DNA from: Guillardia theta CCMP2712
Lineage: Eukaryota; Protista; Cryptophyta
Direction of reading: 5' to 3'
Assembly: GCF_000315625.1 (NCBI RefSeq)
Contig: NW_005434582.1
Span: 1 to 64,000 of the forward strand
Length of the DNA stretch: 64,000 nt
In this document: positions 4,793-24,364 of the stretch, in pieces
Position numbering within the stretch: the stretch's first letter is position 1
Layout: each line of letters begins with the position of its first letter
The notes under the pieces: model-generated
The model's input: the letters and a program-made list of their open reading frames with translations, nothing else
Told to the model about the DNA's origin: nothing
The model's database searches: none
Made by a program: the position numbers and the translations under genes

Positions 4793-7700
4793 ATGATGGT
4801 GAGAAGAAAGCGCGACAACAGCAAGAATCTCACGGGATTGAAAGAATTTGAACACGTAAGAATCTGTTTTGCTGCGTAGTAGGCTGTCCGTTTGGAGGTA
4901 GAGAATGGCCGCTGTGGATAGCGTGTCATATGATGTGTTCTTTGAAGATGATCTTTCAAATGCCATGCTATCAACTGGTGTGTACACCCGTTCACCAGCA
5001 AGTTTTGGTGCTGAACAAGACCCGAACGGATCTACAGGATCATACCGCAAGGACCTGCGTTTGGGAATGTATCACATTAGCAGCGAAGTGATCAATACAG
5101 AAGAAGCCAGCAGTGGCGATGAGTGTTTCTCAGAAAAGTTTTGTGAGAATGTGTTTCAACCCACAGAAAGCAGACCAGAACAATCTCGGTATACACTCAA
5201 CAAAGAATTCTGCAGTCGACAGAAAGAAACAGAAAGAAATGCGAGCCTCGACAGAAAGAAATGCGAGCCTTGTCAGGAGCAAGAAGCAGTTGCAAACAGT
5301 GAGGTGACTGCACCTCTGGCTTCATTCTCTTACGATGAGTCCTTGGGATCTCAACACTCTGTTCCACCTGAAGTGGCATTTCCTTCAAATCAAGAAGGAC
5401 AGGTTCATGGTGCGGTGCACAAGTCAAAGAGGAAGCAATCCCAGACAGCAACTGATCAATCATGCGTGAACACCTCTTATGAAATTCAAGACTCAGGATT
5501 GAAGAAAGTGAAAAGAACCTCATTTGACAAACATGACTTTGAAATGGTGTGCATATCTGAAACCGAGAAATCGAATAAAATGTTGGGAAATCAAAATGAT
5601 ATTTCAGAAACAATAGTAATGTGTGAAGGAAGTCATAGCCTTGCATCATTGCAGTCAAAAATTGAGATTCATCTGACCTCAACCGGGAATGTGGAACTTA
5701 ATTTTGAGTACCAAACAACCGAAAAAGACCCAGAAAAAAATACTCTACCGCATATATCACACCAAGACGGTGAAACCAACAAATCAAAACAGAAAGAACC
5801 GTGCGGAGAAGGAATGCCAGGCTACCCTCGCAGGCCAGTCAGGGGACAGCTGGCAAGGCTTCACGACGGGCGGGGGGAGACGGCTACAGGCATCAAGTAC
5901 AGGACTGAAGAAAGCAGAGGCGTTGTTCTCAGGGCTGGCAGGCGGGGAGGCTGGCAGAGAGACAGAAGAAGGTGCGGAGAAGGAATGCCAGGCTACCCTC
6001 GCAGGCCAGTCAGGGGACAGCTGGCAAGGCTTCACGACGGGCGGGGGGAGACGGCTACAGGCGTCAAGTACAGGACTGAAGAAAGCAGAGGCGTTGTTCT
6101 CAGGGCTGGCAGGCGAGGAGGCTGGCAGAGAGACAGAAGAAGGTGCGGAGAAGGAATGCCAGGCTACCCTCGCAGGCCAGTCAGGGGACAGCTGGCAAGG
6201 CTTCACGACGGGCGGGGGGAGACGGCTACAGGCGTCAAGTACAGGACTGAAGAAAGCAGAGGCGTTGTTCTCAGGGCTGGCAGGCGAGGAGGCTGGCAGA
6301 GAGACAGAAGAAGGTGCGGAGAAGGAATGCCAGGCTACCCTCGCAGGCCAGTCAGGGGACAGCTGGCAAGGCTTCACGACGGGCGGGGGGAGACGGCTAC
6401 AGGCGTCAAGTACAGGACTGAAGAAAGCAGAGGCGTTGTTCTCGGGGTTTGATTGTGTCGAGGAAGGTGAGTCGCAGGCTGAGTGTATGAACGGGTATAC
6501 GAACGGAACTCGGGATGAGGCTTCCCCTACTGATAGGAAAATGTTTCCAAGTCCGAAGGTACCCGCTCAAATTTTCTTTGTTGTGTTGAGTTTAGGATCT
6601 GTTTACGATGTCGATCAGAAATCTCTTGATTCGACGGGGCCTTTTGTAGTTTGCATTTCCAGTGCTGTTGAAAGGTAACTATCTGTCGTGTTGATGTTCA
6701 CTTGTAACATTTCTCAGCACTCAGAACTCTGGTCGACGAATAAGTAGTTTGTCACAGCCATCAACTTTCAATAGCTTCAATGCAACCCCTCAAGATTTTT
6801 CTGCTCGTTCGCCTGAGGTTGATCACAGATCTAAGTACCAATCAAAGACGGAATGCTTGTCGCAAAGTTCAGATCGACTTCAGGACAAGTGTGTCACCCC
6901 GATATCAAACTCAACTCCTAGCTCTTCGTTCTCTTCCAATACTAACTCAACGCCATATGGTCTTGTTTCTTGCAAGACATCCTCTGCTTCAAGATTTCGC
7001 AAGCCATTTAAGATGCCGCGGCGGACGGAGTGTACAGCATCAAAAGAGAAGACAGTTGAACGCAGAAAGATTTCTGATTCTTACCTTTATGAGAACATGC
7101 CACTTGATCAGAAATTGGTCACGCCCAAATTGCTGTTCTCCCCGCGGGGTGACAAATCCAATGTTGTGCACGAGCTATGTGGTACTTCGAATGTTCTACA
7201 ATTGTCCAAAACTGCTACAATTGGTCTTCACGACGCAGTGCATGGAGCATTTCCTTTTTCAGATGAATCAAATGGAAATATCAGTATCCAAGACTATGTC
7301 AAAATTGTTGGGATTACTGCCAAAAATGCAGTTAATGTAAAATTGCCTTGTGAAAGCAGTATATTCTTTGACAGTAACCAGCGGGAAACAAAGAATAATC
7401 ATGCCCAAGTCGGTGTGGATGAAATGTTTTCGAGGTTGCAAACAGTTAATAAGACAGGAGAGTCACTCGATGAGGGGTGGGCTAAACAGCACTACAGCTT
7501 GATTGTTTGGAAACTAGCTTCCATGGAGAGAGCTTTTCCGTCGATCTTTGGAGGAAGTTGCCTCTCTGCCGATAAAGTGTTCTTGCAACTTCTGAATAGG
7601 TACGACATAGAATATGTTCGGGGGAAACGGAGTGTTTTGACGAGGATCAAAGAAAGAGATGAGCTTGCGTCAATTCATTTGGTTCTTTGCGTGTTTGAAA

Positions 7701-9120
7701 TTACGTCTGAAGAAACCACAGTAAGAATGACAGATGGATGGAATTTCGTTGATGTCATTTTGGACGAGGTTTTGGTCACTTTCGTGAGAGGAGGTAAGAT
7801 TTTCGTGGGACAAAAGTTGAGATTGTACGGGTGTGAAATCATTCATCGAGAAGGAAAAGGAATAGCATTAAAGGCTGGAGTTAACAATACTCGAAGGGCT
7901 GAATGGTATGCCAAGCTTGGAGCGCAAAAGTGCAAGCCACCTTTTTTTGGGCTCAAGTCGATAAGACCTGGCGGTGGCGTTGTCCCTCGCATTCTGGTGG
8001 TCGTGCAGAGAGTCTTTCCTGTTTTGGTGATGGAAACTGATTCGAAAGGAAGGAAGGTTTGGAAATCATTAGAATTATATGCTAGGGCCCGGGAAGAAGT
8101 AAACCGCAAGCACGAGGAGTGTTGGGAGGAATTTTTGGCAAAGAGGGTTTGTTGCGATGACAGCGATGAGAATGTCAATCTTTCTGAACAGATTGCTGAT
8201 TTAAGGACAGAATTTCTGTGTACGACGGAGATGAAAGAGAGCGCAGCATGTCCTGTCTTTCGATTCAAGGTTACCTGCTTGCAGCAGCTAGCTTCGGAGT
8301 CACCTGTTCAAGCTTACATCACCTGCTGGAGACCTCAACCATCCATCGTCGAATCCATTCAAGAAGGAAAATGTCTTTCGATCTGCAATCTACAGTGCGG
8401 CAAAGTCACCAAAAATGATCGCATGTGTCTTTCCTTTCTGCCTGGAACTCAGATTTCTGCTTTTCACGATTCCAGAGCAGCTAGTTTGTTCTCGGAGAGG
8501 AAATTTCTCTCCATTGACAACCTTGACCATGTTTCCAACAGCGATGAATTTGATGTGATTGGAATAGTGGCGGCTATCGGCAGGAAATACGTACCTTCGG
8601 GGCAAAGGGAGCTCGAGGAAGATTCATATCATCAATTATTGGCATTGACATCAATCAAAAGGCAGATTGCTACAGAGGAACAAACTGACGTACAAGAGAA
8701 AATGGGCTCTCAATCTATCAAAGATTTTTTGATCGTCCGAATCAATCTGCATTCGGTCGCAGAGTTCAGACAGAGAGATTTGATAAGAGAACCTTTAGTA
8801 ATTAGCGTGAAAGATCTCAGGTAAGAATATTCGCTGATGAGATTATTGCGCTTATATTTGTTGAAGGAACATTAACATAGTATCAAGTGTAAGCGAAGTC
8901 GGTGCAGTCTACACAAGCTTCGCTTCTGAAGAAACCGAATTCCTGGATAGGCCTCGCGGGTCTAGCTTGAACGAGAAATTGTGGGATAATTGCATGCTTT
9001 GGTCCAAGAATGCCAAAGAGGAGCTTGAGGTGAATGAGTTCTCCCTCCACTTTGTCTGAGCTTCTATTGCAGCACAAGTGTCGCCTTGCAGAGGAGGTGA
9101 TCAAGGTTTTCATGATGTAG
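4793..9120 (+). CDS. BRCA2: BRCA2 homolog (BRC repeats, helical domain, OB folds); multi-exon, with an unresolved frame change near 5680-5800
   Basis: Four BRC-like repeats (GFTTGGGRRLQASSTGLKKAEALFSG). DNA-binding-domain motifs WAKQHYSLIVWKLASMERAFP, QLLNRYDIE, RSVLTRIKERDE, MTDGWNFV, GKIFVGQKL, NNTRRAEWYAKLG, VVVQRVFPV. Inferred introns 4856-4901, 6675-6717 and 8821-8866, plus a last intron near 9030-9072; stop TAG at 9118-9120. Confidence 0.92.
5801..6443 (+). repeat. Tandem array of four near-identical 171-bp units encoding 57-aa BRC-containing repeats
   Basis: Units start at 5801, 5972, 6143 and 6314; only about two substitutions seen between copies; the last copy is truncated. Confidence 0.95.
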
Positions 9121-10812: not shown

Positions 10813-12084
10813 TTCGCACGTGCAGCAATCGGATACCAAATTCCAGTGACTGACCACATCCCCCCACCGTCATAGGCTGCGGCGCCCGGCTCGCCTCAGG
10901 GCCCGCCTCCCGGAGTCTGCCCTTGTCACTTGACGACTACTTGAACAATCCCTGAGAATACTGGGGATAAGAATCGGCCGTAGTTCGGCCAAGATGTACC
11001 TTGACAATCAGGGGCACTGTCAGGAAAAGAAAAATTGTTTGTGCTTCCCTCCATTCTGGGAGGGGGCCCGGGGAAACTGTATAGTCCTACCGTACTGTAC
11101 CGCCGCCACTGAACCCAGAGCCCACAAAGCTGATGAGAATTGATGTAACATTCGGAGTCACCATGTGCTATCACGCCACTGTTCTTTATCTCCCCGGCTA
11201 GCCCTCCCTTCCGCTGCCCTCCGACGGTGACGGCTGACTGCGCCCTCCCGGCGCCATGTCAGGAACTTGTGACTTCGGAACTCGGGAATGCTTGTCCGAT
11301 GGTTCCTCTGGAGGAACAAAATATCATTCCTTTGAAGGAACACTGTCACATGCAGAGTCGCCTCCGAGCCCGAGTCGAGCTGGCTGGATGACTAGCAAAG
11401 GGTGGTGTAGTGGAGGGACAGTGTTGAAGGGTAGGGACATATGCGTTCGCCACTAGCAAGAGATATAGAGGATATCAGAAGCAGGGGGTACGGGGGCACC
11501 GATCGCCATGATGGCGATGTTAGAAATTCCATGGCGAGTCCTTATCTTTCATTTCAGTACCGTTGAAAATTTTGTCAACTAATTTTCAAAGTTTAGATGA
11601 CATATTTAAATGTTCCTCCCCTACCCTTAGTGTCTTTTCTTTCAAGTTCATTGGACACCCTACCAGCCGTGACTGATGGAACATGCACCATACCACCTGA
11701 AGCACCTATCCCTCTCTCATCCTCGTTTGATCTTAGTGATACACTTATAAGATCTAATCGCTCTAGCCGAGGTGATTATTGCAGTCCTATGCCATGCCCT
11801 TTGCTTCGACAACCCCTACCCCCTTCTCCAACCTACATATAAACAACCCACCTACCCCCCACGTTTGTCTCTGGCGATGCCGTCCAACTGCTATCGCTGC
11901 AAGGCAAGGAGCAGCTGAGATGAGACGCTTGCTGGCCTTGCATACGTGATGGAGATGCTCTCATTTAAGCCCTCCCCCTCCCCCTCCCCCCCCCCACATC
12001 TCTTCCTTCCATCATTCTCTTCCTGTATTGCTGGAACACTTGGTGGTGACCTTCATAGATCGCTTTTGACTCGCGTTGCTCCAG

Positions 12085-13333
12085 ATCGTGGTCGATGCTT
12101 ACACCACCAACAGCTCAAAATGCGTAAATACAATGGCTGTTGGACTTTTGCGATCTGACTTTGAAACTTTTACATTATCGAATGCTGGGTTCTGTTGGGT
12201 CGGATAGCGAGTAAGGATCTTGATCATTACATGTAGGCGGGTGTTGGCTGACATTGGATTTTGCACTTCCGTGTGTGTTCCTGGATGGCATCATCATGAT
12301 GCTTACAGCTTGTAAGTCTGTTGCTGCCATGATGCCGTGCGGAAATGTTTCAGGCTAACATCATTGATTTCTGGTCGGTTGCTGACTCGGATGGGGTTGT
12401 GCGGGCGGGGATAATGACAGTATGTAAGTGTCTTGAATAACATATCACTCAGGGGATAGAGGGGACTGACATTGATTCATTGATAATATTTGTGTTTGGT
12501 TGCTCACTCGAACGGGTTTGATAGAATGTAAGTGTCTTGATTGAAGCTCGCGGTCAGGCATTCTCGGCTGACAATGCTTGTGCTTTTCGCTGTCTTTGGG
12601 TGGGCTGGATGGGTTGCGGGATCGGATAGCGAGTGAGTATCATGATGGGAGCATGCAGTCAGAGGATGATTGACTTACGTCTTGTTGATTTCAATCGCTG
12701 GTTTTACAATGCAATGGGCTTGTTGTCGGGATCGGGTAGTGGGTAAGAATCTTGATTGAATTCTCCGGCCCGTGGAGGGCAAGCTGACATTGATCGCGCC
12801 CCTATCTCCGTGCTTGGGATCGGATGGATGGGATCTTCGATCGTATAGGCGGTAAGTATCTTGATATAACATGCAATCGTTGGGTCGATAGGGACTGAAG
12901 TTGACAATTTCTGGTTTGATCTGACTCCCACGGGATTGTGTGTGCGGGTATAGTCTGTGAGTAACTAAGTTGATGAACAATCCGCTCAGGAGTCGACTGA
13001 TATTGTTTGTGCTTGTTTTCGGTGCTTGGGGTTGTGTGGACAACTTGCGGGATCGGATAGTCGGTAAGTATCTCACTTGAAATATGCGGCCACAGGAGTG
13101 AGTCGATTGACTGACATGTGCTTGTGCTTTGTGCTGTCTTCGGGGTCGGATTGATGGGTTGAACCGGATAGGGAGTAAGTATCTTGAGATGAAAAGTAAG
13201 GTCTGCGAAAGATTTGCTGACTTTCTTGTGCTGTCTCCGTGCTTGCGTTCGGATGAATGGGCTATTCGATTGAATAGCGAGTAAGTATCTTGTTGGGAGC
13301 ATGCGGTCAGAGAATCGCTGATTGTTGTTTCAG
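12085..13333 (+). other. Array of eleven 3-nt microexons separated by ~100-110-nt related introns; probable 5' part of the ROCO gene
   Basis: yAG|NNN|GTRAG at 12208 CGA, 12309 CTT, 12421 TAT, 12525 AAT, 12630 CGA, 12740 TGG, 12849 GCG, 12954 TCT, 13061 TCG, 13172 GGA and 13278 CGA. Each upstream intron has a YTRAY branch site then an AG-free ~50-60 nt stretch. A 39-nt exon (12085-12123) precedes the array; a normal 53-nt intron (13281-13333) follows it. Confidence 0.85.
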
Positions 13334-16300
13334 TGCTGCTTGTGCTACTTCGACAAAAAATCGGAAGAAGAACGATCAGACATGTGTCAACACTGCAAGG
13401 ATCGACGCTCTCTCATACACGACCTGGAGGAAGGTCTTGTATCTGCCAATCCCAGCGCGCAGGAAGCATTCAAGAAGATCGAGGAATTCCGTGAGCACGT
13501 CAGCGAAGCGGGAAAGCCTTTCGCTGAGAGGCTAGACCTGGCCAAGTCTCACTACCTCTTCGGGATGCAGAAGGAGCCTCTTGCTGTGGACGCCGTGAAG
13601 CTGCTCATGTCAAACGGAGAGCTGGGAAAATGCTACAGCGTCGAGAAAGGCGAGCTCAACCTGTCTTTGCGAACAGGTAGCATGAAACGATACATTATAC
13701 GAGAACTGAGAATGAAGACCCTCCCGGGGTGGATTGCCATAGTCGCCATCCCTATCCGGACCATTGACATCTCCGGAAACCCCAACCTTTCCAGCCTGCC
13801 CTTGGATGAGCTGTGCAGCATGAGAGATAGTCTGAAGGAGATGAACTGCCAAAACTGCATACGGCTGCAGCTGCCTCCACCAGAGATCGCCGGTCAAGGA
13901 GGAGAAGCAAGTTTCATGTACATGCAGAGTGTCAAGACGGACAGCGAGACAAACAAAAGGATGAATCTCATTCTGATTGGCAACGGGGAGGCAGGGAAGA
14001 CGAGCGTGTTCAGAGCTCTAAGTTCTGTGGAGAACAAGGCTGGCAAGATCGATGTGGACAAGAGGACGATCGGGATAGATCTGGATAGATGGGAACCTGA
14101 TGGGGCTGACGGGCTGACGTTCGACGTGATGGACTTCGGGGGACAAGAGGTCTACGGCAAGACGAACCAGTACTTCATTGTGAGGCGGGCCTTGTACCTG
14201 CTGGTGTGGAACGTGAGGACGACGAGAGATGAGATGAGTGCAGGTGGAGCCGCAGGGAGCATGAAGGAGCTGAGGGCGATGATTTCTACCTGGTTGCGAA
14301 CGCTGCAAGCAAGAGTGCCGGGAGCGAGTGTGATGCTGGTGGCGACGCACATCGACATAGCTGGGCAGAGCGAGATAGAGGATCAGTCCGAGGAGGTGAG
14401 AAAATGTGTGCAAGAGGAGCTGAAAAAGATGTCAGAAGAAGAAGACGAGAATATTCTTCCCTTACATGTCATACGCGAAGGCGGGAGCTTCAGAGTAAAC
14501 TGTCTTGAGGGAGAGGGAATCAAGGAGCTCCGAGCCTCTGTGTGCCAGGCGGCAAAGGAGCTGCTGTGGTGGAATGAGAGCATACCTCGGCCCTACCTGA
14601 AGCTGAGACATGCGGTGGAAGTTCAGTCAAAGAACGAGCCTTATTTGAAGGTAGAGCAATACTTGAAGATGTTGAAGGAAGCAGAAGTCGAAGAGAAAGA
14701 AGAGAAGATAGTGACGAGCTTCTTGCACGACATGGGAGTCCTCAAGTACTTCGGTCGGGAGCTGAAAGCAATGCATAGCAGGGAAGCAGAGAGCAAGTAC
14801 TCCGTGGAAGACACGGTCTTCATTGACATCGAATGGATGATCGACGTATTCAAGGGCGTGATGCGACATGACTGGCGGCATCTCCTCGACTTCTTCCACC
14901 AGGACCCAACCAAGTCAAAGAAGACGAAGAAGCTGCTACACCTGGGCATCATAGACGAAGACATGTTCGAGTACCTGTGGCCCCAGCCAAACAGCAAGTT
15001 CTGGAGCGAAGAGAAGTCAGGGAAGTCATGTAGATCAGCTGAGATAGGCTTCACTAAGAGCCATGTGGAGGTCGAGCAGGCAGTGGCCCTGCTTCAGGGT
15101 TGCGACCTGGCACACTTCCTGGGTGCGGGGGAAATGGTTGATGCGGAAAACGAGGAGACCAAGAGGGAGCTGCTTTGCCCCGGCATCATCCCGTCGTTTA
15201 CGCATCAGCACAAGCAAGCAGTGAGGGACTCGCATTCTCTGTGCGCACGCCTGCAATGCGAGTACAACTTCTTCCCCATCGGCTTCATCGACAGGCTGGT
15301 CGTGCTGTCCGCCGCTCGCCACTTTGAGGTAGACTGCAGCGGCTCGATGGCGGTGATGAAGGGCTGGGGGCGAACACTTGTGATGAGCTGGCGCGAAGAC
15401 GAAGGCAAGCATATGGTGATAGCAGTTGCGTCGACGAGGCAGCAGATCGAGAACTTGGATAAAGACCTGAAGCGGCTGGAGGCGTTCTTTCCGGGGGTGA
15501 AAAGGAGGAGTGATAAGAAAGGCTCGGGCAAGGAGGCGGTGCAGGTTGGGATCTTTTCGTATGGAGTGAAGTCAGGAGAGTGTGCGTGCAATATTGAAGG
15601 AAATATGATGAACATATACAACGCAGAGAAACGCTGCATAGATCTCACATGCACGATCTACCGATGTGAGAGGCAAATTAGCGATCTGACTGATAATTGC
15701 CTCGTGAACATCTTGTGCATCTCGACCGAGTTTTTGGATGAGCTTGAAGCAAAGCAAGGAGGAGGAAGCTTCTGCGAGCGATGGAACATGTTGACCACGA
15801 GCAAAGCAGTCATCATCCCTGTTATTCTGAAGGATTATTATCACAAGCACATTGAAGGGCCTAGAAGGTTTAACAAGTGGTGGCCGCAGAGGATACAGAA
15901 GATGGAGCGATACAAGGTGTTCCACAAGTACATCAAGGATGACAAAGTCTCGATGTGCATGCTGTATGACAGTATCATTATGAAGTTGCATCACGGACGA
16001 GGGAGCTTCGAAGACTTGTTGGATGTCACCAGTCAGAACATGCTTCTGTGCGAAGATTGCTTGTATCAGATGTCCAAGTCTCAAGATCACTCGCGGGGCG
16101 ATGAAGGTGTTGGCACATTTGATCCCTCAGAGGTGAAAAGAGCCATAGAAGATCGAAGAACCGGCATCACGACCAAACAGAGAGGGCTAGATAGAGAAGA
16201 TTTCATCCAACGGGAGATCATGGTGAACTTTATCGCTTGCTCACGTGGTCACAAGAAGCTTGTAAAGGAGATGCTTGAGTTCAACAGCTCCAGCTCCCCC

Positions 16301-17338
16301 TGTCCGTCGTGCTTGAAGCAGAAGACTGTACCTCACTTCTTCAGCAGACCGACGTGTCTGAGCAAGCTTGCTCGCGACCTTGCGGCTAAAATTGAATGTC
16401 CTACATGTGGAATGCACGTGGATGTCTTCGACGTCACGCCTCCGCAGGTTTTCTTGAGCTACCAGTGGGGGCACAAGTGTTCGACGCAAGAAATGGTGAA
16501 GCAGGTGAAGCGGCGGATCGAGGAGCAGACAAGCTTGCAGTGCTGGCTCGACGTGGAGGGAGGGATCAACCCTGGTGAAGATCACATGCAGAAGATGGAG
16601 CTCGGGGTGTCTCGGTGCGAGGTGTTTGTGGTCTTCATGAGCGACAAGTACGTCAAGAGCGCCAACTGCAGGAGGGAGTTCGCGCGGGCGTGTGAGACAG
16701 GAAGGTATATCATCCCAGTGTTGGTGCCGGTTCAATTTCAACCGGATCAAGACTCGGCTAGCGGCTTAGAGTCCGAGTCCGGCTGGAAGGGCGACAAGAG
16801 GCATCAAGACTGGTGGAAGAGGATCTCTGGGATCGAGCAGGGCGAAGGAGCTGCGCTAGAAGTTGAGGTCAACTGGAGGCATTTCAAGTCATTTCCTCAG
16901 ACCTTCGAGCTCGAAGCTGAGATGCGAGGAGAAAAGGTGCTGGTGAAGCGAGGTGTTCAAGAGCTGGTCGCGGCTGTGCAGGCAAGAGCTTACAGGGGAA
17001 GCATCGTCTGGCACGAGTTGAAGCCTGTAGCATGGGGAGCGAGCATCGCACGTTCTTGCGCAGAAGAGAAACCTGAGATGGAGCAACGGGTTCACCAAGA
17101 GGAGGAGCCGGAGAGCACACCAGGAGGGGAGGATGACTTTGGGGAGCAAGACGAGGGGAGATATGAGAAGCTGAATCCGATGGAGGAGCTGCTGGGCAGT
17201 GGAAGTACAACCCTTTTTAAGGATCGAGACAGGAGCAAGGATTACGAAATTTCTGCTGGAGATGGCGTGACTGGGGATGAAAAGTACGCCCTTGCAGAGT
17301 ATCAGACGAAGGCGTCATCTTGTTGTGTCGTCAGTTAG
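13334..17338 (+). CDS. ROCO-family protein: LRR - Roc GTPase - COR - degenerate TIR-like segment - CxxC region - TIR - CaaX
   Basis: LRR IRTIDISGNPNLSSLP...LPPPEI; P-loop GNGEAGKTS; RTIGID; DFGGQEVY; LVATHID; COR-like FLHDMGVLKYF and FFPIGFIDRL; TIR QVFLSYQW...CWLDV...VFVVFMSDKYVKSANCRREF...IIPVL; C-terminus SSCCVVS*. One uninterrupted ~4-kb exon. Confidence 0.92.
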   Translation, partial: CCLCYFDKKSEEERSDMCQHCKDRRSLIHDLEEGLVSANPSAQEAFKKIEEFREHVSEAGKPFAERLDLAKSHYLFGMQKEPLAVDAVKLLMSNGELGKCYSVEKGELNLSLRTGSMKRYIIRELRMKTLPGWIAIVAIPIRTIDISGNPNLSSLPLDELCSMRDSLKEMNCQNCIRLQLPPPEIAGQGGEASFMYMQSVKTDSETNKRMNLILIGNGEAGKTSVFRALSSVENKAGKIDVDKRTIGIDLDRWEPDGADGLTFDVMDFGGQEVYGKTNQYFIVRRALYLLVWNVRTTRDEMSAGGAAGSMKELRAMISTWLRTLQARVPGASVMLVATHIDIAGQSEIEDQSEEVRKCVQEELKKMSEEEDENILPLHVIREGGSFRVNCLEGEGIKELRASVCQAAKELLWWNESIPRPYLKLRHAVEVQSKNEPYLKVEQYLKMLKEAEVEEKEEKIVTSFLHDMGVLKYFGRELKAMHSREAESKYSVEDTVFIDIEWMIDVFKGVMRHDWRHLLDFFHQDPTKSKKTKKLLHLGIIDEDMFEYLWPQPNSKFWSEEKSGKSCRSAEIGFTKSHVEVEQAVALLQGCDLAHFLGAGEMVDAENEETKRELLCPGIIPSFTHQHKQAVRDSHSLCARLQCEYNFFPIGFIDRLVVLSAARHFEVDCSGSMAVMKGWGRTLVMSWREDEGKHMVIAVASTRQQIENLDKDLKRLEAFFPGVKRRSDKKGSGKEAVQVGIFSYGVKSGECACNIEGNMMNIYNAEKRCIDLTCTIYRCERQISDLTDNCLVNILCISTEFLDELEAKQGGGSFCERWNMLTTSKAVIIPVILKDYYHKHIEGPRRFNKWWPQRIQKMERYKVFHKYIKDDKVSMCMLYDSIIMKLHHGRGSFEDLLDVTSQNMLLCEDCLYQMSKSQDHSRGDEGVGTFDPSEVKRAIEDRRTGITTKQRGLDREDFIQREIMVNFIACSRGHKKLVKEMLEFNSSSSPCPSCLKQKTVPHFFSRPTCLSKLARDLAAKIECPTCGMHVDVFDVTPPQVFLSYQWGHKCSTQEMVKQVKRRIEEQTSLQCWLDVEGGINPGEDHMQKMELGVSRCEVFVVFMSDKYVKSANCRREFARACETGRYIIPVLVPVQFQPDQDSASGLESESGWKGDKRHQDWWKRISGIEQGEGAALEVEVNWRHFKSFPQTFELEAEMRGEKVLVKRGVQELVAAVQARAYRGSIVWHELKPVAWGASIARSCAEEKPEMEQRVHQEEEPESTPGGEDDFGEQDEGRYEKLNPMEELLGSGSTTLFKDRDRSKDYEISAGDGVTGDEKYALAEYQTKASSCCVVS

Positions 17339-18590: not shown

Positions 18591-21500
18591 ATGGCAGGTG
18601 CTGTCTGAAAGACTTCTATCTGATCCCCTCATGCTTCAGAGCTCTACGGCATCGGCCTCATGTTCCGTCACGACACGCAAGGGCTCGTCAGGATCTGCGG
18701 CATCCAACCGGATGGACCAGGTGGGTTGACGGACGAGAATTGTCTTACCAGCAAGAGTGACCTCTCCTTGCTCTCCTTGCTCTCCTTGTCCTGCTTCGTT
18801 TGTATCCTCTCCTTGTTCTCCTGACGTTCTTTCGCAGCGGCGGAGAGCAAGATGCTAAGCATCGACGATGTGCTGCTGGCTGTGGATGGGAAGAACGTGG
18901 CCGGACTCAGTAAGCGTTGGCTGCCGCGGCCTGAGATGAGAGTTGTGGTAACAGGCATTCAAAGCATCCGGAACCTTCTTGTCGGCTTGTTTGGGACAAC
19001 GGTTGTCCTCGACGTTCAGGTTCTGTTGATCTCTGGTGGAGACAATATGGCTCATGTTTCATTCCTTCTGTTGGCATGCAGAAGGCCCAAAGTCAGACTG
19101 CCAGCCATGGGGTGTGCCCTTGCTAGTTCTTCGCCACTTGCCGTAGTCTGATCCGACTCATGCCTTCTCCTCCTCTCCTTTGTTGCTCCTCTCCTCTCCT
19201 CTCCTCTTCTTCCCCTCTCTTCCCGTTTCCCTCCTCCAGGTTCACTTCGGAGTATTCAGTTCGACTCCTTCGACAAGGTGAGCCTCCCCGCCCTCCCCAG
19301 AAACATCACTCTTCCAGAAAGTCCCTCCGCCTCTTTTGCTTCGTCCTATCATGCTCCTCCTTGCTCCCCGTGATCTCGTGGCGTGCTAGGAGGATCAGAG
19401 TGCAGCTGAAGAGGACCTACAAACCCAGTCCTCTCCCGCAAGGTTGTAGATCCTCTGACCTACTTCACCCTGTTTGACGATGTCATGTGTGTTAGCAGCC
19501 AACAACGTCGAGCAGGCGGCAGATGCTACGGGCGGTCCGAGCGCAAGTGAGACGAGAGAGGCGTCAGCAGCGCAGCAGCATTTGCACCCCTCGGATACCC
19601 GTGACGCGGGTGTGCTCAAGGACCAGCAAGATGGTAAGATGCACCGAGACGAAAGACCAGAGGGCAATGGCAGCGCACCCTTGAAGGCTGATCCGGAGGA
19701 GATAGACGCGACTGGTGTCAATGGATCGAGCGAAGCAGTGGAAACGAAGTTCCATGGCGAAGTGCACGAGGCCTCGGAGGCACAAGGAGGGCAGAAGGAG
19801 AGTGGTTTCAGCGAGAATGACTCTGCTGCTGCAGAGGATGAGGTGAAGGGAAGAGGAGAGGAGGAAAAAGAAGACATGCATGCAGCAACAGATCAAGTCA
19901 AGGAAGGGCAATTCCAGGAGAAGGACGTGGAGCTTGCCGAGAAGCAAGTGGAAACCGATGAGAAAGGGGAGGAGAGGCCTGAAGCGTCTGAGGGGCAGGA
20001 GAGGCAGCAGGATGGCGATGGGGAATCTACGTTGGAAGGAGAAGAAAAGGAGGCAGAGGCTGTGGTGGAAGAACAAGATCTTGGCATCAAGGAAGAATCA
20101 CAGGAAGTAGCAAAGCCAGAGGCGGTTGAGGAACGATGCGAAGGCGAGAAAGAGGTCGAACTCGGGGAAGCAGGAGAGGAGGCACATGCTGAAGCGGAGG
20201 ACGGACAAAATGGACAAGAAGTAGTAGAGGCTCAGGCAAGGGACGAGGATGAGTCGGCAGCAAAGGAAAGGGAGGAGGAGATGAGTGAAGTCACTTCGAA
20301 GAATGCAGAGGAGGTTGAGGAGCCAGGAGCAAGCGCTGCTAAGCAGCAGGGTGCTGAAGGAGGAGGCAGAGATGTCGCGTCTCCTGCACCAAAGGAGGCA
20401 AACCTTTCGGTGGAGATCTCGTCAGGCCTCAAGGTAAGGAGGTGTAGAACGATGTCAGGGGCTCACTGGGAGCAGGAGGTTGACGGTGGGCAGACGGCAA
20501 AGGAAGCTTCACAGCTTCTGAAGGTGAGATGGTGGGAGGGAGCATGACTGTCTCGTGACCGGAGCATGTGATGAGCAGGCAGAGCAGGAGAGGAGCAGAA
20601 ACTCAGGAACTCCTCGTGCAGTCTCGATGCTCAACAGGAAAGACCTCCACGAGCTCAAGACGTTCAAAGTGCCCTCCTCCCCATGCATGCTTCGCATCAA
20701 CGGCTCCAGGTTCCCCTGCGTCTCTCGCGTCCCATGCTCTTCCTCCCTGCTCGCAACCAACGCTGTGAGTGTGGTCTGGTGCCCCTCTGGCCGGATCCTC
20801 GTCTGGCATGGCGCGTCGTCGAGCGCGCAGGAGCGGGTGAAAGCGCTGGAGATCGCTTCTGCTCTCAAGGACATAGAGCACTGCGCTAGGGGAAAGATCC
20901 AGCGGGTAGAGGAAGGAGACGAGGAGGGAGACTTTTGGGAGCTGGTTGGCCCTCCTCTTACGGAAAAGAAGGTGTCAAGTCTGCCGGACGAGTCGAGCTA
21001 CTGGAGCGCGATGGAGGTTTATGGATGGAGGGAGGAGGACGAGAGAGTCGAGGTGAGCGAGAGGCCCTTGCGGCAGCAGATTCTGCGATCAGACAGCTCC
21101 TTCGTGATCGCCTCCTCCTTCATCGGTATCTTCGTGTGGGTCGGGCGTGAGAGCTCGCAAGCAGCTGCTGAAGCTGCACGAGCAGAGGCAGACGCGATGG
21201 CTGCGAAGATGCGAAGAAGTACGAGGAACAGAGCGAGTAACGGGAACCATGCAGGAGAGGAAGGCGACGAGGAAAGAGCCAACATGGACGGGGAAGAACA
21301 TGACTGCAGCACTGAGGAGGAAAAAGGCAGAGCGGAAGATGGGGCAGAACATTGTGTAGAAGGGACTGGGGGTGAGGAGGGTGTAGCTGAAGGTGGAGAA
21401 CAAAGGGAAGATGACGAAGAGGAGAATGTGCAGGAGGAGGAGGCAGGTCAAGAAGAGGAGGACAGCAGCACTGGAGGAAGGGAAGGAGGGGAGGAGGTGG

Positions 21501-24364
21501 AATTTGAGGTGGAGACAGTGCTGGAAGGATGGGAGCACAGCATCTTCAAGTCGCTCTTTGTCGACTGGCTCACTGCGTGCGGCACCAGCAGCAAGCAGCA
21601 AGTGGCTGCCTCGAGCCCGATCGTCGACGGGAAGCAGCTGGGGAGGCAGGCGAGGGCGACCATGACCCCGACCTCCAAGGGGGTCAGGAGGAGGTCGGAC
21701 GGGCACGTGGAGCTCGTGTGCGTGCAAGGGAGGAGGTTCATCACGGCGAGGAGTATCGACCCTGTGGCAGCTGCGGTGAACAATCGTGACATATTCATCC
21801 TCGATACTGGAAGGTGCGTGTACCAAAGGAACGGCAGGCAGTCCTCCCCTCAGGCCAAGGCCAAGGCGGCAGAGATCTGCCTGGCATACGTCCAGATGCA
21901 TGCGGGGAAGGCTCTGCATGTTGTGCTGGACCCTGATGATGACAAGGAACAGACGGGAGACAGCCTGGAGTTTTGGAACAGACTGGGAGGACGAGGAAAC
22001 GATAGAGGGACTGAGGAGGAGGAGGAGGAGGAGGCAGCGCCGGATGAGAGCGAAATCAAGTCGAGGATCAAGCTCTGGAAGGTGGGGGACGGCGGGGAGG
22101 CGATGAAAGAGATCCCGAGGCCTTACAGGCAGAGCTGTCTGTGCTCCGACGGCGCGTTTGTGCTCAGCTGGGAGGAAGAGCAGCTGTTTGTCTGGACGGG
22201 GAACATCGCGTCGACCAAGACGAAGCAGAAGGCGTTTGACTGGGCGGCTGAACTGCAAAGAGAGACGGAGAAGAAGAAGAAGAAGCTGGTAGCGGTGGAG
22301 GCGGCGGTCCAGTACGGAGAGCCGCCGCTGTTTCGCTCCCATTTCATCGGGTGGATCTCCGATCGCCTGCCCGACAGGAGTAGACCTGAGGAGAAGGCCA
22401 GTCACGAGCCTGCCAACTTGAAACTGGACAGCACGAAGATCCTTGAGAAAAGAGCTTCTGAGATCGACCTGGAGGCCATGGAGGGGAGTGGAGGCGCGAC
22501 TCTGCCGCTGATCACGCCGGCTGTCAAGCACGATGATGGTAGCACTGGTTCGTGCCGAGTGTGGGTTGTAGAGCAAGGAAGGCTCAAGGAGGTGGAGGCT
22601 GAGGTGGAGAAGGGGAGGGAGGAGGAGAACGAGACGGCTAGCCGTCCGCTCGTGCTTGACAGCAGGCACTGCTACGTGATGCGATACACCTACTGCCCCG
22701 GGATCGACAGGCAGCAGACTAGGAGCATCACATACGTGTGGCAAGGACGGTGGGCGGGAAGAGCGAGCGTAGCAGCAGCGGTGATGTCGATGAATGAAGT
22801 ATCGGCATCTTCGACTTCCGCCTTCCATGACGACAAGGAGGTCGTTCAGGAGGGAAAAGAGTCGCAGCACTTCCTCATCGCCATGGGCAAGGCGCTCATC
22901 ATCACTCCAGCCGAGCACACGGACGAGGGCAGGACGGAGCAGAGGAGCAGGCTGTTCATGGTGTGCGACTTCGGCGATGCTCCGTCCTCCGGCGCAGCAG
23001 TTGGGATGGCGGTGGAGGTGAAGGCAAGGATGGAAAGTTTCTACTCAGGCGCCTGCTACTTCCTCATCCCCTCCCAAGAGGAGGCGGGAGGCAAGGGCAG
23101 CTCAGTCGTGTATGTGTGGATGGGAACCGTCGCCAGGCAGCCGATGCGTGCGCTGGCAGAGACATGCGCCCGTGCTCTCGTGACGGCAGACGTGGAGGTC
23201 AAGCAGGTGGAGGAGGGGGAGGAGACGAAGGAGTTCTTGAAATGCCTGGGGGACGCGGAGAAAATGTCAAACTATGCTCGAGTGAACTTGAACGACGGCG
23301 GGAGAGCAGCAGGAGAGCAGCTGATGGGGTTGACCCGATTGTTTCACTTCGAGATGGCTGGGACGATGGTGAGGCCGAGGGAAGTTGCTCGCCCTTCTGC
23401 TCCGGTGAGGAGGAGAGGGAGGAGGAGCAGTGGGGGATGAGTTTGGAGAGGAGGGAGGAAGAGGAAGGCAGCGTCGGAGCCGTTCTTTCCTTAGATCACA
23501 TCTGCTGTAGGACCTCCTGGAGGCGCCGACTGGGATCTGCATGGTTGACCGTGCGGTAGTCAAAAGCTGTTTGACCTAACAACGTCTCTTACTCCTCCTT
23601 GCAGGACCCAAAGAGGCTCAGTGGCAGCTTGTATGTCTGGTACGAGCGAGATTGCAGTGAACAGGTTGGAAAATTAGTCGCATCTTCGTTCTTCCTTGCT
23701 GCTGCTGCTGCACTTGCTGCTGCTGCTGCTGCAGCTGTACTTGCTGCTGCCGCCGCTGCTGCTGCGGCACCTGCGTCTGCTGCACATGCTGCGTCTGCTA
23801 CTGCTGCACCTGCTGCTGCTGCCGCTGCTGCTGCCCCTCCTCCTGCCTCCTCCTTCTCTTGTCTGTTTCTTTTGACTCGCAGTCTGCAGAGACTTCAGTC
23901 TTGCCTCTCGGTCGCCAAGCGCTACTTGGACGCTCGCAATCGTCGACTTCAGTCCCAAGGCAAACACACTATGCCCACCTGATGCTTACCTGATACTCTT
24001 GCTGACTCTTCTCGATCCTTTGACCAGGTGCGTCAACGGAGAACTACGATGAAGAACCGACGCTGATCAAGCAGGGAGAGGTGGAGAACTTCCTTGTCTC
24101 CTTTGCCACTGAGAACTTCCATCTCTCCTGCTCCTTTCCCCTCCTTCACCTCCTTCACCTCCCCTCCCTCCTTCACCTCCCCTCCCTCCTTCACCTCCAC
24201 CTCCTTCCCTTCCTTCCGCTCCTTTCCCTCCTCCCCTCACCTCGACGAACTCATCGGTCTCGCTCCTACAGGAGACGGCTGACTTCTTCCGATGCTTCAT
24301 CGGCATGGATCGCTCCTTTCAACTGCAAGACCGACCAGCTCTCCCCTCCTTCCTTTCCTCCTAG
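18591..24364 (+). CDS. PDZ + acidic linker + gelsolin/villin-repeat protein (multi-exon)
   Basis: Spliced N-terminus MAELYGIGLMF...GIQPDGP-AAESKMLSIDDVLLAVDGKNV (PDZ-like). Gelsolin motifs ILVWHGASSS, IFVWVGRES, VNNRDIFILDTG, LFVWTG, VQYGEPPLFRSHF, YVWQGR, VQEGKESQHF, VYVWMG, VEEGEETKEF and LIKQGE-ETADFFRCF. Confidence 0.85.

Follow-up and report, generated by a model that had tools for sequence, protein, structure and literature searches.

How can a run of exons of only three nucleotides (nt) each be spliced into a messenger RNA, and what would such a run contribute to a protein? The question is raised by positions 12124 to 13333 of a 64-kb window of the Guillardia theta CCMP2712 genome (contig NW_005434582.1, positions 1 to 64,000, forward strand). 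The first-pass annotation had placed eleven single-codon microexons there, upstream of an LRR-Roc-COR-TIR gene, and had proposed that they vary the protein by being skipped in different combinations. We found that the triplets are real single-codon exons, that splicing joins them in order, in the frame of the open reading frame (ORF) that follows, and that the variation that can be demonstrated lies between paralogous germline genes, not between transcripts. The array is likely to consist of eleven self-contained one-codon intron cassettes whose codons are constitutively included and form a germline-diversified recognition loop in a receptor family resembling those of innate immunity.

Both strands of the window were scanned by regular expression for YAG-NNN-GTRAG, and 11 of the 16 matches lay at 12205-13275 on the plus strand; the other five were scattered singletons. 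All eleven microexons are preceded by a canonical acceptor (YAG) and followed by a donor (GTRAG). The triplets, in the order CGA CTT TAT AAT CGA TGG GCG TCT TCG GGA CGA, and their spacings (101, 112, 104, 105, 110, 109, 105, 107, 111 and 106 nt) agreed exactly with those first reported. Every microexon is one whole sense codon and keeps the frame, and the joined codons read RLYNRWASSGR. The units of the array can be aligned as divergent copies of a single ~105-nt repeat; the consensus has 5' GTAAGTATCTTGAT, a branch-like CTGAC motif near +40 and 3' GGATCGGATAG. Tandem Repeats Finder reported no ~105-nt period in the window because the copies are only ~70% alike. By this alignment, the ten repeated introns are tandem duplicates of one another.

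Four public sequencing runs (X1, X3, X7 and X12) were mapped onto positions 11500-14000; X1 and X3 come from different studies. X1, X3 and X7 are contig runs, in which rare variants are dropped and differences are listed from 2 in 100 upward, and the raw-read RNA run, X12, placed a single read and is uninformative on isoforms or ends. The parts of the gene, with the junctions seen, are as follows.

11877..11903, plus strand: predicted exon 1, 27 nt; ATG followed by CxxC, ending in phase 0 and reading MPSNCYRCK, as judged from paralogs.
11904..12084, plus strand: predicted GC-AG intron 1, 181 nt, as judged from paralogs; donor GCAAGG, branch-like TTGAC at 12068.
12085..12123, plus strand: exon 2, 39 nt, phase 0, reading IVVDAYTTNSSKC; 3' end joined to 12208 in an RNA contig.
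12124..12207, plus strand: array intron 0, 84 nt, donor GTAAAT; removal seen in X1; CTGAC 49 nt from the 3' end and an AG-free tail of 75 nt.
12208..12210, plus strand: microexon 1, CGA (Arg); two junctions seen in X1 contigs.
12309..12311, plus strand: microexon 2, CTT (Leu); two junctions seen, from an X1 loose end and the joint 12311->12421.
12421..12423, plus strand: microexon 3, TAT (Tyr); two junctions seen in X1.
12525..12527, plus strand: microexon 4, AAT (Asn); two junctions seen in X1, where a loose end reads ...AAAATGC CGA CTT TAT AAT and continues at 12630.
12630..12632, plus strand: microexon 5, CGA (Arg); 5' junction seen in X1, with intron 5 downstream retained in the listed contigs.
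12740..12742, plus strand: microexon 6, TGG (Trp); 3' junction to GCG seen in X1 and X3.
12849..12851, plus strand: microexon 7, GCG (Ala); two junctions seen in X1 and X3, with the letters CGTCT between 12743 and 13061.
12954..12956, plus strand: microexon 8, TCT (Ser); two junctions seen in X1 and X3.
13061..13063, plus strand: microexon 9, TCG (Ser); 5' junction seen in X1 and X3, with intron 9 retained in the listed contigs.
13172..13174, plus strand: putative microexon 10, GGA (Gly), with intact splice signals; neither junction among the listed contigs.
13278..13280, plus strand: microexon 11, CGA (Arg); 3' junction 13280->13334 seen in X1 and X3, where intron 10 is retained.
12211..13277, plus strand: ten repeated array introns of 98-109 nt between the microexons; donors GTAAGT, GTGAGT, GTAAGG or GTAAGA.
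13281..13333, plus strand: last intron, 53 nt, of ordinary design; branch site CTGAT 12 nt from the AG; removal seen in X1 and X3.
13334..17338, plus strand: main exon, an open frame starting CCLCYFD...CQHC and encoding Roc, COR-A and TIR_2 before the stop.

One X1 contig carried both the joint 12123->12208 (84 nt removed, GT..AG) and the joint 12311->12421. A second ran from the end of exon 2 through CGA CTT TAT AAT to 12630 (CGA) and into unspliced intron 5. Contigs of X1 and X3 passed from 12743 to 13061 via the letters CGTCT, that is, TGG GCG TCT TCG, and the joint 13280->13334 was present in both runs. These joints agree with the donor at 12123/12124 and the 53-nt last intron that had been proposed. 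Of the twelve introns, nine were shown to be removed (0-4, 6-8 and the last) in contigs of two studies, which bears out the claim that the microexons are real and in frame. Both junctions were seen for microexons 1-4, 7 and 8, one for microexons 5, 6, 9 and 11, and none for microexon 10. The order of nine codons was the same in X1 and X3, which are independent runs.

X7 was collinear with the genome and showed no joints, as DNA would. Upstream of 12088 the depth in X1 and X3 was zero, and introns 2 and 7 were barely covered; for these reasons, and given the behaviour of X7, contigs with retained introns were taken to be RNA intermediates rather than DNA contamination. The X1 intermediates followed no 5'-to-3' order: one lacks introns 0 and 2 and keeps 1, 3 and 4, and another has lost introns 0-4 and keeps 5. 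Introns 5, 9 and 10 appear mostly retained, and introns 2 and 7 are nearly without depth. From the unordered intermediates, neighbouring array introns may hinder each other's splicing.

The array introns share a distinctive design. When all 11 of them (0-10) were compared with 5000 shuffles, an AG-free 3' stretch of 50-75 nt was found in 11 of 11 (50-72 nt in the ten repeated ones), with a mean of 65 nt against 14.5 in the shuffles, none of which (0/5000) reached the observed mean. The acceptor is preceded, 49-66 nt (~57) upstream, by a branch-like CTGAC, CTAAC or TTGAC, and the TTGAC of predicted intron 1 appears, on reading the sequence, to stand at a distance from its AG similar to the 12 nt of the last intron. 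Donors in most array units (GTAAGTAT) match what we take to be the 5' end of U1 over positions +1 to +8. Recognition signals would all be intronic because a 3-nt exon has no room for exon definition, and we hypothesize that placing the branch site far away prevents the U2 complex on one intron from colliding with the U1 complex on the next. Conserved RNA structure was also considered for the array introns and rejected: there was no excess of structure that would shorten the branch-to-acceptor distance, the mean z-scores against shuffles being close to zero (-0.01 for whole introns and +0.23 for tails).

The first-pass annotation had raised the question whether periodic arrays of this kind are enriched at ROCO, TIR and LRR genes. 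We scanned the genome (87.1 Mb, 669 contigs) for three consecutive units, with the reversed pattern as a control, and obtained the following counts.

Three units with a 3-nt exon: 229 matches against 0-1 reversed; mostly real arrays, plus two short-period satellites (C54 and C94).
Three units with a 3-nt exon, strict TAG/GTAAG: 69 against 0 reversed; all real arrays.
Three units with a 2-nt exon: 47 against 21 reversed; three short-period satellites.
Three units with a 4-nt exon: 36 against 44 reversed; not enriched.

Arrays were found on at least 23 contigs. Detailed comparisons were made across 17 loci, namely the window (W) and 16 fetched loci (L009-L024), and the 16 others were all made of 3-nt exons, with 3 to ~30 per locus. 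Most arrays end with a 6-nt exon, TGCTGT, TGCTGC or TGTTGT (all Cys-Cys), followed by AAT, and near-identical introns were found in different loci. At every locus examined the array lay directly upstream of a family gene. Roc-COR-TIR genes were among the hosts (four loci), and the other downstream ORFs encoded kinase-PARP, kinase, kinase-RING, kinase plus caspase, caspase and an AKAP7-like 2H phosphoesterase. The longest array, L013 (C116:129984-133170), has ~30 one-codon exons rich in TGG, CTG and CTT and precedes a kinase-RING ORF; in contrast to the window cassette, the introns of this array are purine-rich (GAGAGG) in their 5' half. Satellites with splice-site-like words at C54:28728-29338, C94:182762-183528 and C76:394595-395504 (20-, 27- and 11-nt units) are not microexon arrays, and they swell the counts of a naive pattern search.

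At loci with resolvable flanking exons, the array occupied one position in a common module, CxxC-x13-C-[array]-CC-x-C-x13-C-x-H-C, and a 39-nt exon 2 homologue ending in Cys was present at 13 of the 17 loci. In the window the module reads CYRC, 13 residues, C, the 11-residue loop, CCLC, 13 residues and CQHC, so that the loop does lie between conserved cysteine motifs, near which it had been placed. Judging from the spacing of the cysteines, the module may resemble two four-cysteine knuckle pairs, with the loop in place of one knuckle's two-residue spacer. In an alignment of seven paralogs, no frame of exon 2 other than the claimed phase 0 is open in every one. The exon 2 cysteines, encoded interchangeably by TGC and TGT, are conserved, and the residues between them vary. 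Likewise in exon 1, paralog comparison shows that the inter-cysteine residues vary and the Cys codons swap TGC/TGT synonymously; the pattern M-x3-C-x2-C-[QK] with its GC donor is kept at 10 of the 17 loci. Paralogs with an intron 1 of 59, 89, 170 or 181 nt share the donor motif GCAAGRGAG, and a CCCTCC/poly-C repeat lies at 11970-11995 inside predicted intron 1. The 15-25 bases after the GC donor (GCAAGRGAGMAGCTG..., window 11904-11930 and the same place in L009-L021) are conserved between distant paralogs, in introns that differ threefold in length, and some paralogs have within these bases a short frame opening with ATG, MRCCYLE*. A transcript-derived protein from another species, P0034, has eleven residues followed by CC-N-C-x13-C-x-H-C, in frame with a kinase-RING protein. 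Its loop could not be matched to a G. theta array, as it comes from another species and is ~54% identical to the best loci.

The predicted product is ~1,370 amino acids (aa) long, and its N-terminus, MPSNC..., is not hydrophobic, as judged by reading the sequence. In Pfam searches, the Roc (aa 212-341, PF08477, 4.4e-12) and COR-A (aa 418-553, PF16095, 1.9e-10) matches were above the cut-off, as was TIR_2 (aa 1039-1137, PF13676, 2.2e-17, 64 bits against a cut-off of 28); the COR-B match was weak. For the LRR part of the original LRR-Roc-COR-TIR label the signal was weak, with a single LRR_1 match (E=0.053, 14.1 bits) below the cut-off of 20.6. The cysteine-rich start of the main exon, P0034 and P0003 gave no Pfam match.

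As had been anticipated, standard annotation missed the array. The public model P0001 is 100% identical to the main exon and starts at MCQHCK, 16 codons inside it, and the array and all upstream exons are unannotated in the public model of this gene. Public G. theta models (P0001, P0002 and P0003) begin at an internal Met or run through an intron end, and for this reason the family's cysteine-rich N-terminus is missing from protein databases. Homologs were found in Guillardia theta CCMP2712, with relatives in Hanusia phi. Searches of 1.84 billion representatives with the full ORF, the first 200 aa and the first 120 aa found no transcript-derived Roc-COR-TIR protein with a complete N-terminus; all Roc-COR-TIR matches started at or after the internal Met or read through the intron end (P0100).

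We then asked whether the array codons bear the marks of coding sequence. Among 197 three-base exons at the 17 loci there was no stop, against 9-16 expected (P 8e-5 to 9e-8); with TAG excluded, which also makes a competing acceptor, ~9 stops would still be expected. Relative to the downstream ORFs, Tyr was enriched 6.2-fold, Trp 4.9-fold and Gly 2-fold; Gln was absent, Glu, Val and Cys were depleted, and Ile and Lys were lower, though not significantly. Codons ending in AG were nearly absent from the 17 loci (CAG 0, AAG 1, GAG 2), since such a codon would make a second acceptor right before the donor, and this accounts for the missing Gln. C was rare at the third codon position (5%).

Codons also diverged far more than the introns beside them. 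In intron pairs that were 83% identical, codons showed 29-38% per-base identity, compared with 27-28% in unrelated pairs, and in junction pairs with 94%-identical 30-nt flanks the codon was the same in 27%, against 83% expected at the flank rate. The identity profile stayed at 0.8-1.0 up to the exon and fell to 0.39-0.52 at exactly the three exon positions; codons diverge ~6-8 times faster than does the intron next to them. Two accounts are open: selection diversifies the codon, or conversion makes the introns uniform and selection maintains the differences among codons. Under both, the residue matters. The loops of the closest paralogs (65% identical proteins) share nothing with the window loop, and the window array is an old one.

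These observations fit a gene that would consist of exon 1 (27 nt), a GC-AG intron, exon 2 (39 nt), eleven 3-nt exons and a 4-kb main exon, with the eleven codons forming a loop between the cysteines of a cysteine-rich, probably zinc-binding, N-terminal module. Every splicing signal would lie inside the intron: a strong donor, a distant branch site (~57 nt) and an AG-free spacer that makes the acceptor the first AG reached. As the signals are all intronic, a duplicated cassette would be splice-competent at once. The array introns would be removed in no fixed order, with partly spliced intermediates abundant. During evolution, gain or loss of a cassette would alter the loop by one residue without a frameshift, and the codon would turn over far faster than its flanks. 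Each of ~25 paralogs would thereby present its own Tyr/Trp/Gly-rich loop on a conserved scaffold, with a signalling or cell-death effector attached.

Several points weigh against this reading. Exon 1, the GC donor and the start codon lack RNA coverage and were deduced from paralogs, and transcript-derived Roc-COR-TIR proteins from Hanusia phi and MMETSP start at or near the internal Met. The listed contigs gave no instance of intron 5, 9 or 10 being removed, and no fully spliced mRNA of this gene was found among them. The dominant contigs of X1 and X3 retain intron 10 (also 9 and 5), and retention of intron 10 would bring a stop into frame; moreover, X1 and X3 are only guessed as RNA by their records. 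Codon choice is shaped in part by what the splice sites need, as seen in the rarity of C at position 3 and of AG endings. Gene conversion could be the source of the fast codon turnover, if it makes introns uniform while selection preserves the differences among codons. Both a zinc-binding role and any ligand of the N-terminal module are conjectural.

The first-pass annotation had favoured cassette exons that are skipped in any combination, giving up to 2^11 transcript-level loop variants per gene. Because each microexon is a single sense codon, any subset would indeed keep the frame; the many intermediates show that splicing is not uniform; and schistosome micro-exon genes (MEGs) are described as varying their proteins by exon skipping. 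Nevertheless, no microexon-skipping joint and no direct joint 12123->13334 occurred in the three contig runs, which cannot show rare forms, and the raw-read run offers one read. X1 and X3 agree on codon order, the strong U1-matching donors and first-AG acceptors point to constitutive inclusion, and the variation actually observed lies between genes. We consider combinatorial skipping unlikely. A broader proposal, in which single-codon cassettes are an evolvability device that builds a zinc-stapled cytosolic loop on an algal immune or cell-death receptor, diversifies it one residue at a time in the germline, adds stochastic skipping within cells in the manner of Dscam, and arose convergently in organisms seen in metagenomes, is doubtful as a whole. 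It is distinctly unlikely that the array serves mainly as a splicing-gated leader, a kinetic or quality-control barrier in which twelve packed splicing events have to be completed for the mRNA to become productive, which limits a dangerous TIR, caspase or PARP effector, while translation starts at the internal Met and the loop residues are of minor importance. That partly spliced forms dominate, with introns 5, 9 and 10 retained in the main contigs of both runs, would suit such a leader, as would the start of public and transcript-derived models at MCQHCK or nearby. A 5' untranslated region would not exclude stops, yet none occurred in 197 codons; nor would it fix exon sizes at 3, 6, 27 and 39 nt, keep cysteines synonymously, or make the codon a sharply bounded hypervariable island with a Tyr/Trp/Gly bias. 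A splicing-gated regulatory role and a coding role could coexist.

Could the array instead be a neutral, selfish expansion, an introner-like minisatellite of intron plus codon that grew by slippage in a permissive linker, with selection purging only stops and frameshifts? The units are tandem duplicates, introns are near-identical across loci, and array length varies from 3 to ~30 units, all of which such an expansion would produce. Neutral codons, however, should share the identity expected at the flank rate (~83%) and not the 27% found, and the strong amino-acid bias speaks against it too. Arrays also sit between the same cysteines of one gene family's module, wherever resolved, and are not scattered in unrelated genes. 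We regard this explanation as very unlikely. There is scarcely any chance that the stretch is non-coding satellite or encodes a repetitive protein on the minus strand. Long minus-strand ORFs do exist (12675-13076 and 12802-13302), but they are a by-product of a plus strand that is AG-free and G/T-rich, and they gave no significant Pfam match. Splice signals are strand-specific, and the GT..AG joints on the plus strand in RNA contigs refute both versions.

The array shows that a spliceosome is able to recognise and join long runs of 3-nt exons, which tests the limits of intron-definition models and suggests a design rule: signals that are all intronic, a distant branch point and an AG-free spacer after it. 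The layout escapes gene predictors and read aligners, and as a result TIR, kinase, caspase and PARP proteins throughout this family have mis-annotated N-termini in the reference cryptophyte genome. The family also offers a testable case in which gene structure may promote evolvability, by letting single residues be gained or lost, without harm to the frame, in a hypervariable loop of a protist's candidate immune receptors.

Some known systems share part of this architecture. Recursive splice sites are juxtaposed 3' and 5' sites, with zero-length exons, that leave nothing in the mRNA. The array resembles them in that an acceptor is followed almost at once by a donor, removal is stepwise and intermediates are abundant; unlike recursive sites, three bases per site are retained in the G. 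theta contigs. Introners are near-identical short spliceosomal introns with their own splice signals, dispersed singly in unrelated genes, whereas the G. theta cassettes follow one another in tandem, at a single position within one gene family only.

A full-text literature search for tandem 3-nt or single-codon exon runs and for Guillardia microexons found no description of them, only isolated 3-nt exons in animals and plants. The statement that no run of eleven 3-nt exons had been described was upheld, and as far as this search reached, a gene layout of consecutive one-codon exons is undescribed. Single 3-nt microexons are known from Drosophila homothorax, human MAP4K5 and plants (PMC7392893, PMC8632122, PMC8831610). 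Like the exons described here, they have canonical splice sites, are included in mRNA and are usually missed by aligners and annotators; they are isolated between long unrelated introns, however, whereas those of G. theta stand in tandem, up to ~30 of them, between homologous introns.

Schistosoma MEGs, whose exon sizes are quoted as 3-81 bp (PMC10526429), likewise combine runs of very short, frame-symmetric exons with protein variability and fast evolution. Most MEG exons exceed one codon, and together they form the bulk of a small secreted protein; their introns reach 5 kb and are not described as mutual repeats, and variation arises by alternative splicing. The G. theta introns, by contrast, are 84-109 nt cassette copies, the array provides a loop of only 11 residues, and 4 kb of coding sequence lies in one exon; the product is a large intracellular multidomain protein with no visible signal peptide, and no alternative splicing was seen in contigs. 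Brown-algal ROCO and NB-ARC candidate receptors, in which LRR/TPR repeats are shuffled by exon (PMC3341825, PMC11378527), are similar in that candidate immune receptors draw a variable part from phase-symmetric duplicated exons. There, the ROCO exon is a whole ~24-residue repeat in a C- or N-terminal repeat domain, whereas the G. theta exon is one loop residue; unlike the brown-algal ROCO repeats, the G. theta module is also found in kinase, caspase, PARP and RING proteins.

Metagenomes were examined in one scan with a generic three-unit pattern. Most matches were plain satellites with one repeated 'codon', often TAA, and were rejected. Contigs of a very AT-rich eukaryote (GC 17-22%), L025 (WNGF01082377.1), L038 (WNGF01149738.1) and L077 (WNGA01158722.1), carried 4-17 varied 3-nt exons, repeated introns of ~90-110 nt, long AG-free tails and no stop among ~29 codons. 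The L025 and L038 arrays lie directly upstream of protein-kinase ORFs with the motif ...EWIPYN.F.NI.Y..., which we presume to be that of a Glomeromycota-type TKL kinase. A GC-31% contig of 1209 nt, L031 (Ga0213864_10142092), has ten ~129-nt units with the exons CCT CGG GTG CTT CTG GTG CGA CCT CTC CCC; its introns have a yeast-type TACTAAC ~70 nt before the acceptor and are AG-free over 95-119 nt. L098 (JADMIO011409360.1, 5300-6500, minus strand, GC-45%), which may be fungal, has two short arrays, GAA TAT GTC CTC and GCA CCA CCC, downstream of a putative caspase-like ORF and one with a Zn2Cys6-like motif, both judged by reading the ORFs. The AG-free stretch fills most of the intron in nearly all look-alike units, and, given that this design recurs in unrelated organisms, the architecture seems to have more than one origin. 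The occurrence of such arrays in unrelated eukaryotes from metagenomes points to a more general phenomenon.

Elsewhere in the window, the ORF at 6749-8824 (plus strand) encodes a BRCA2-like protein with helical and OB1 domains, and that at 20555-23440 (plus strand) encodes a gelsolin-repeat protein with a DUF7904/MPK1 C-terminal domain.

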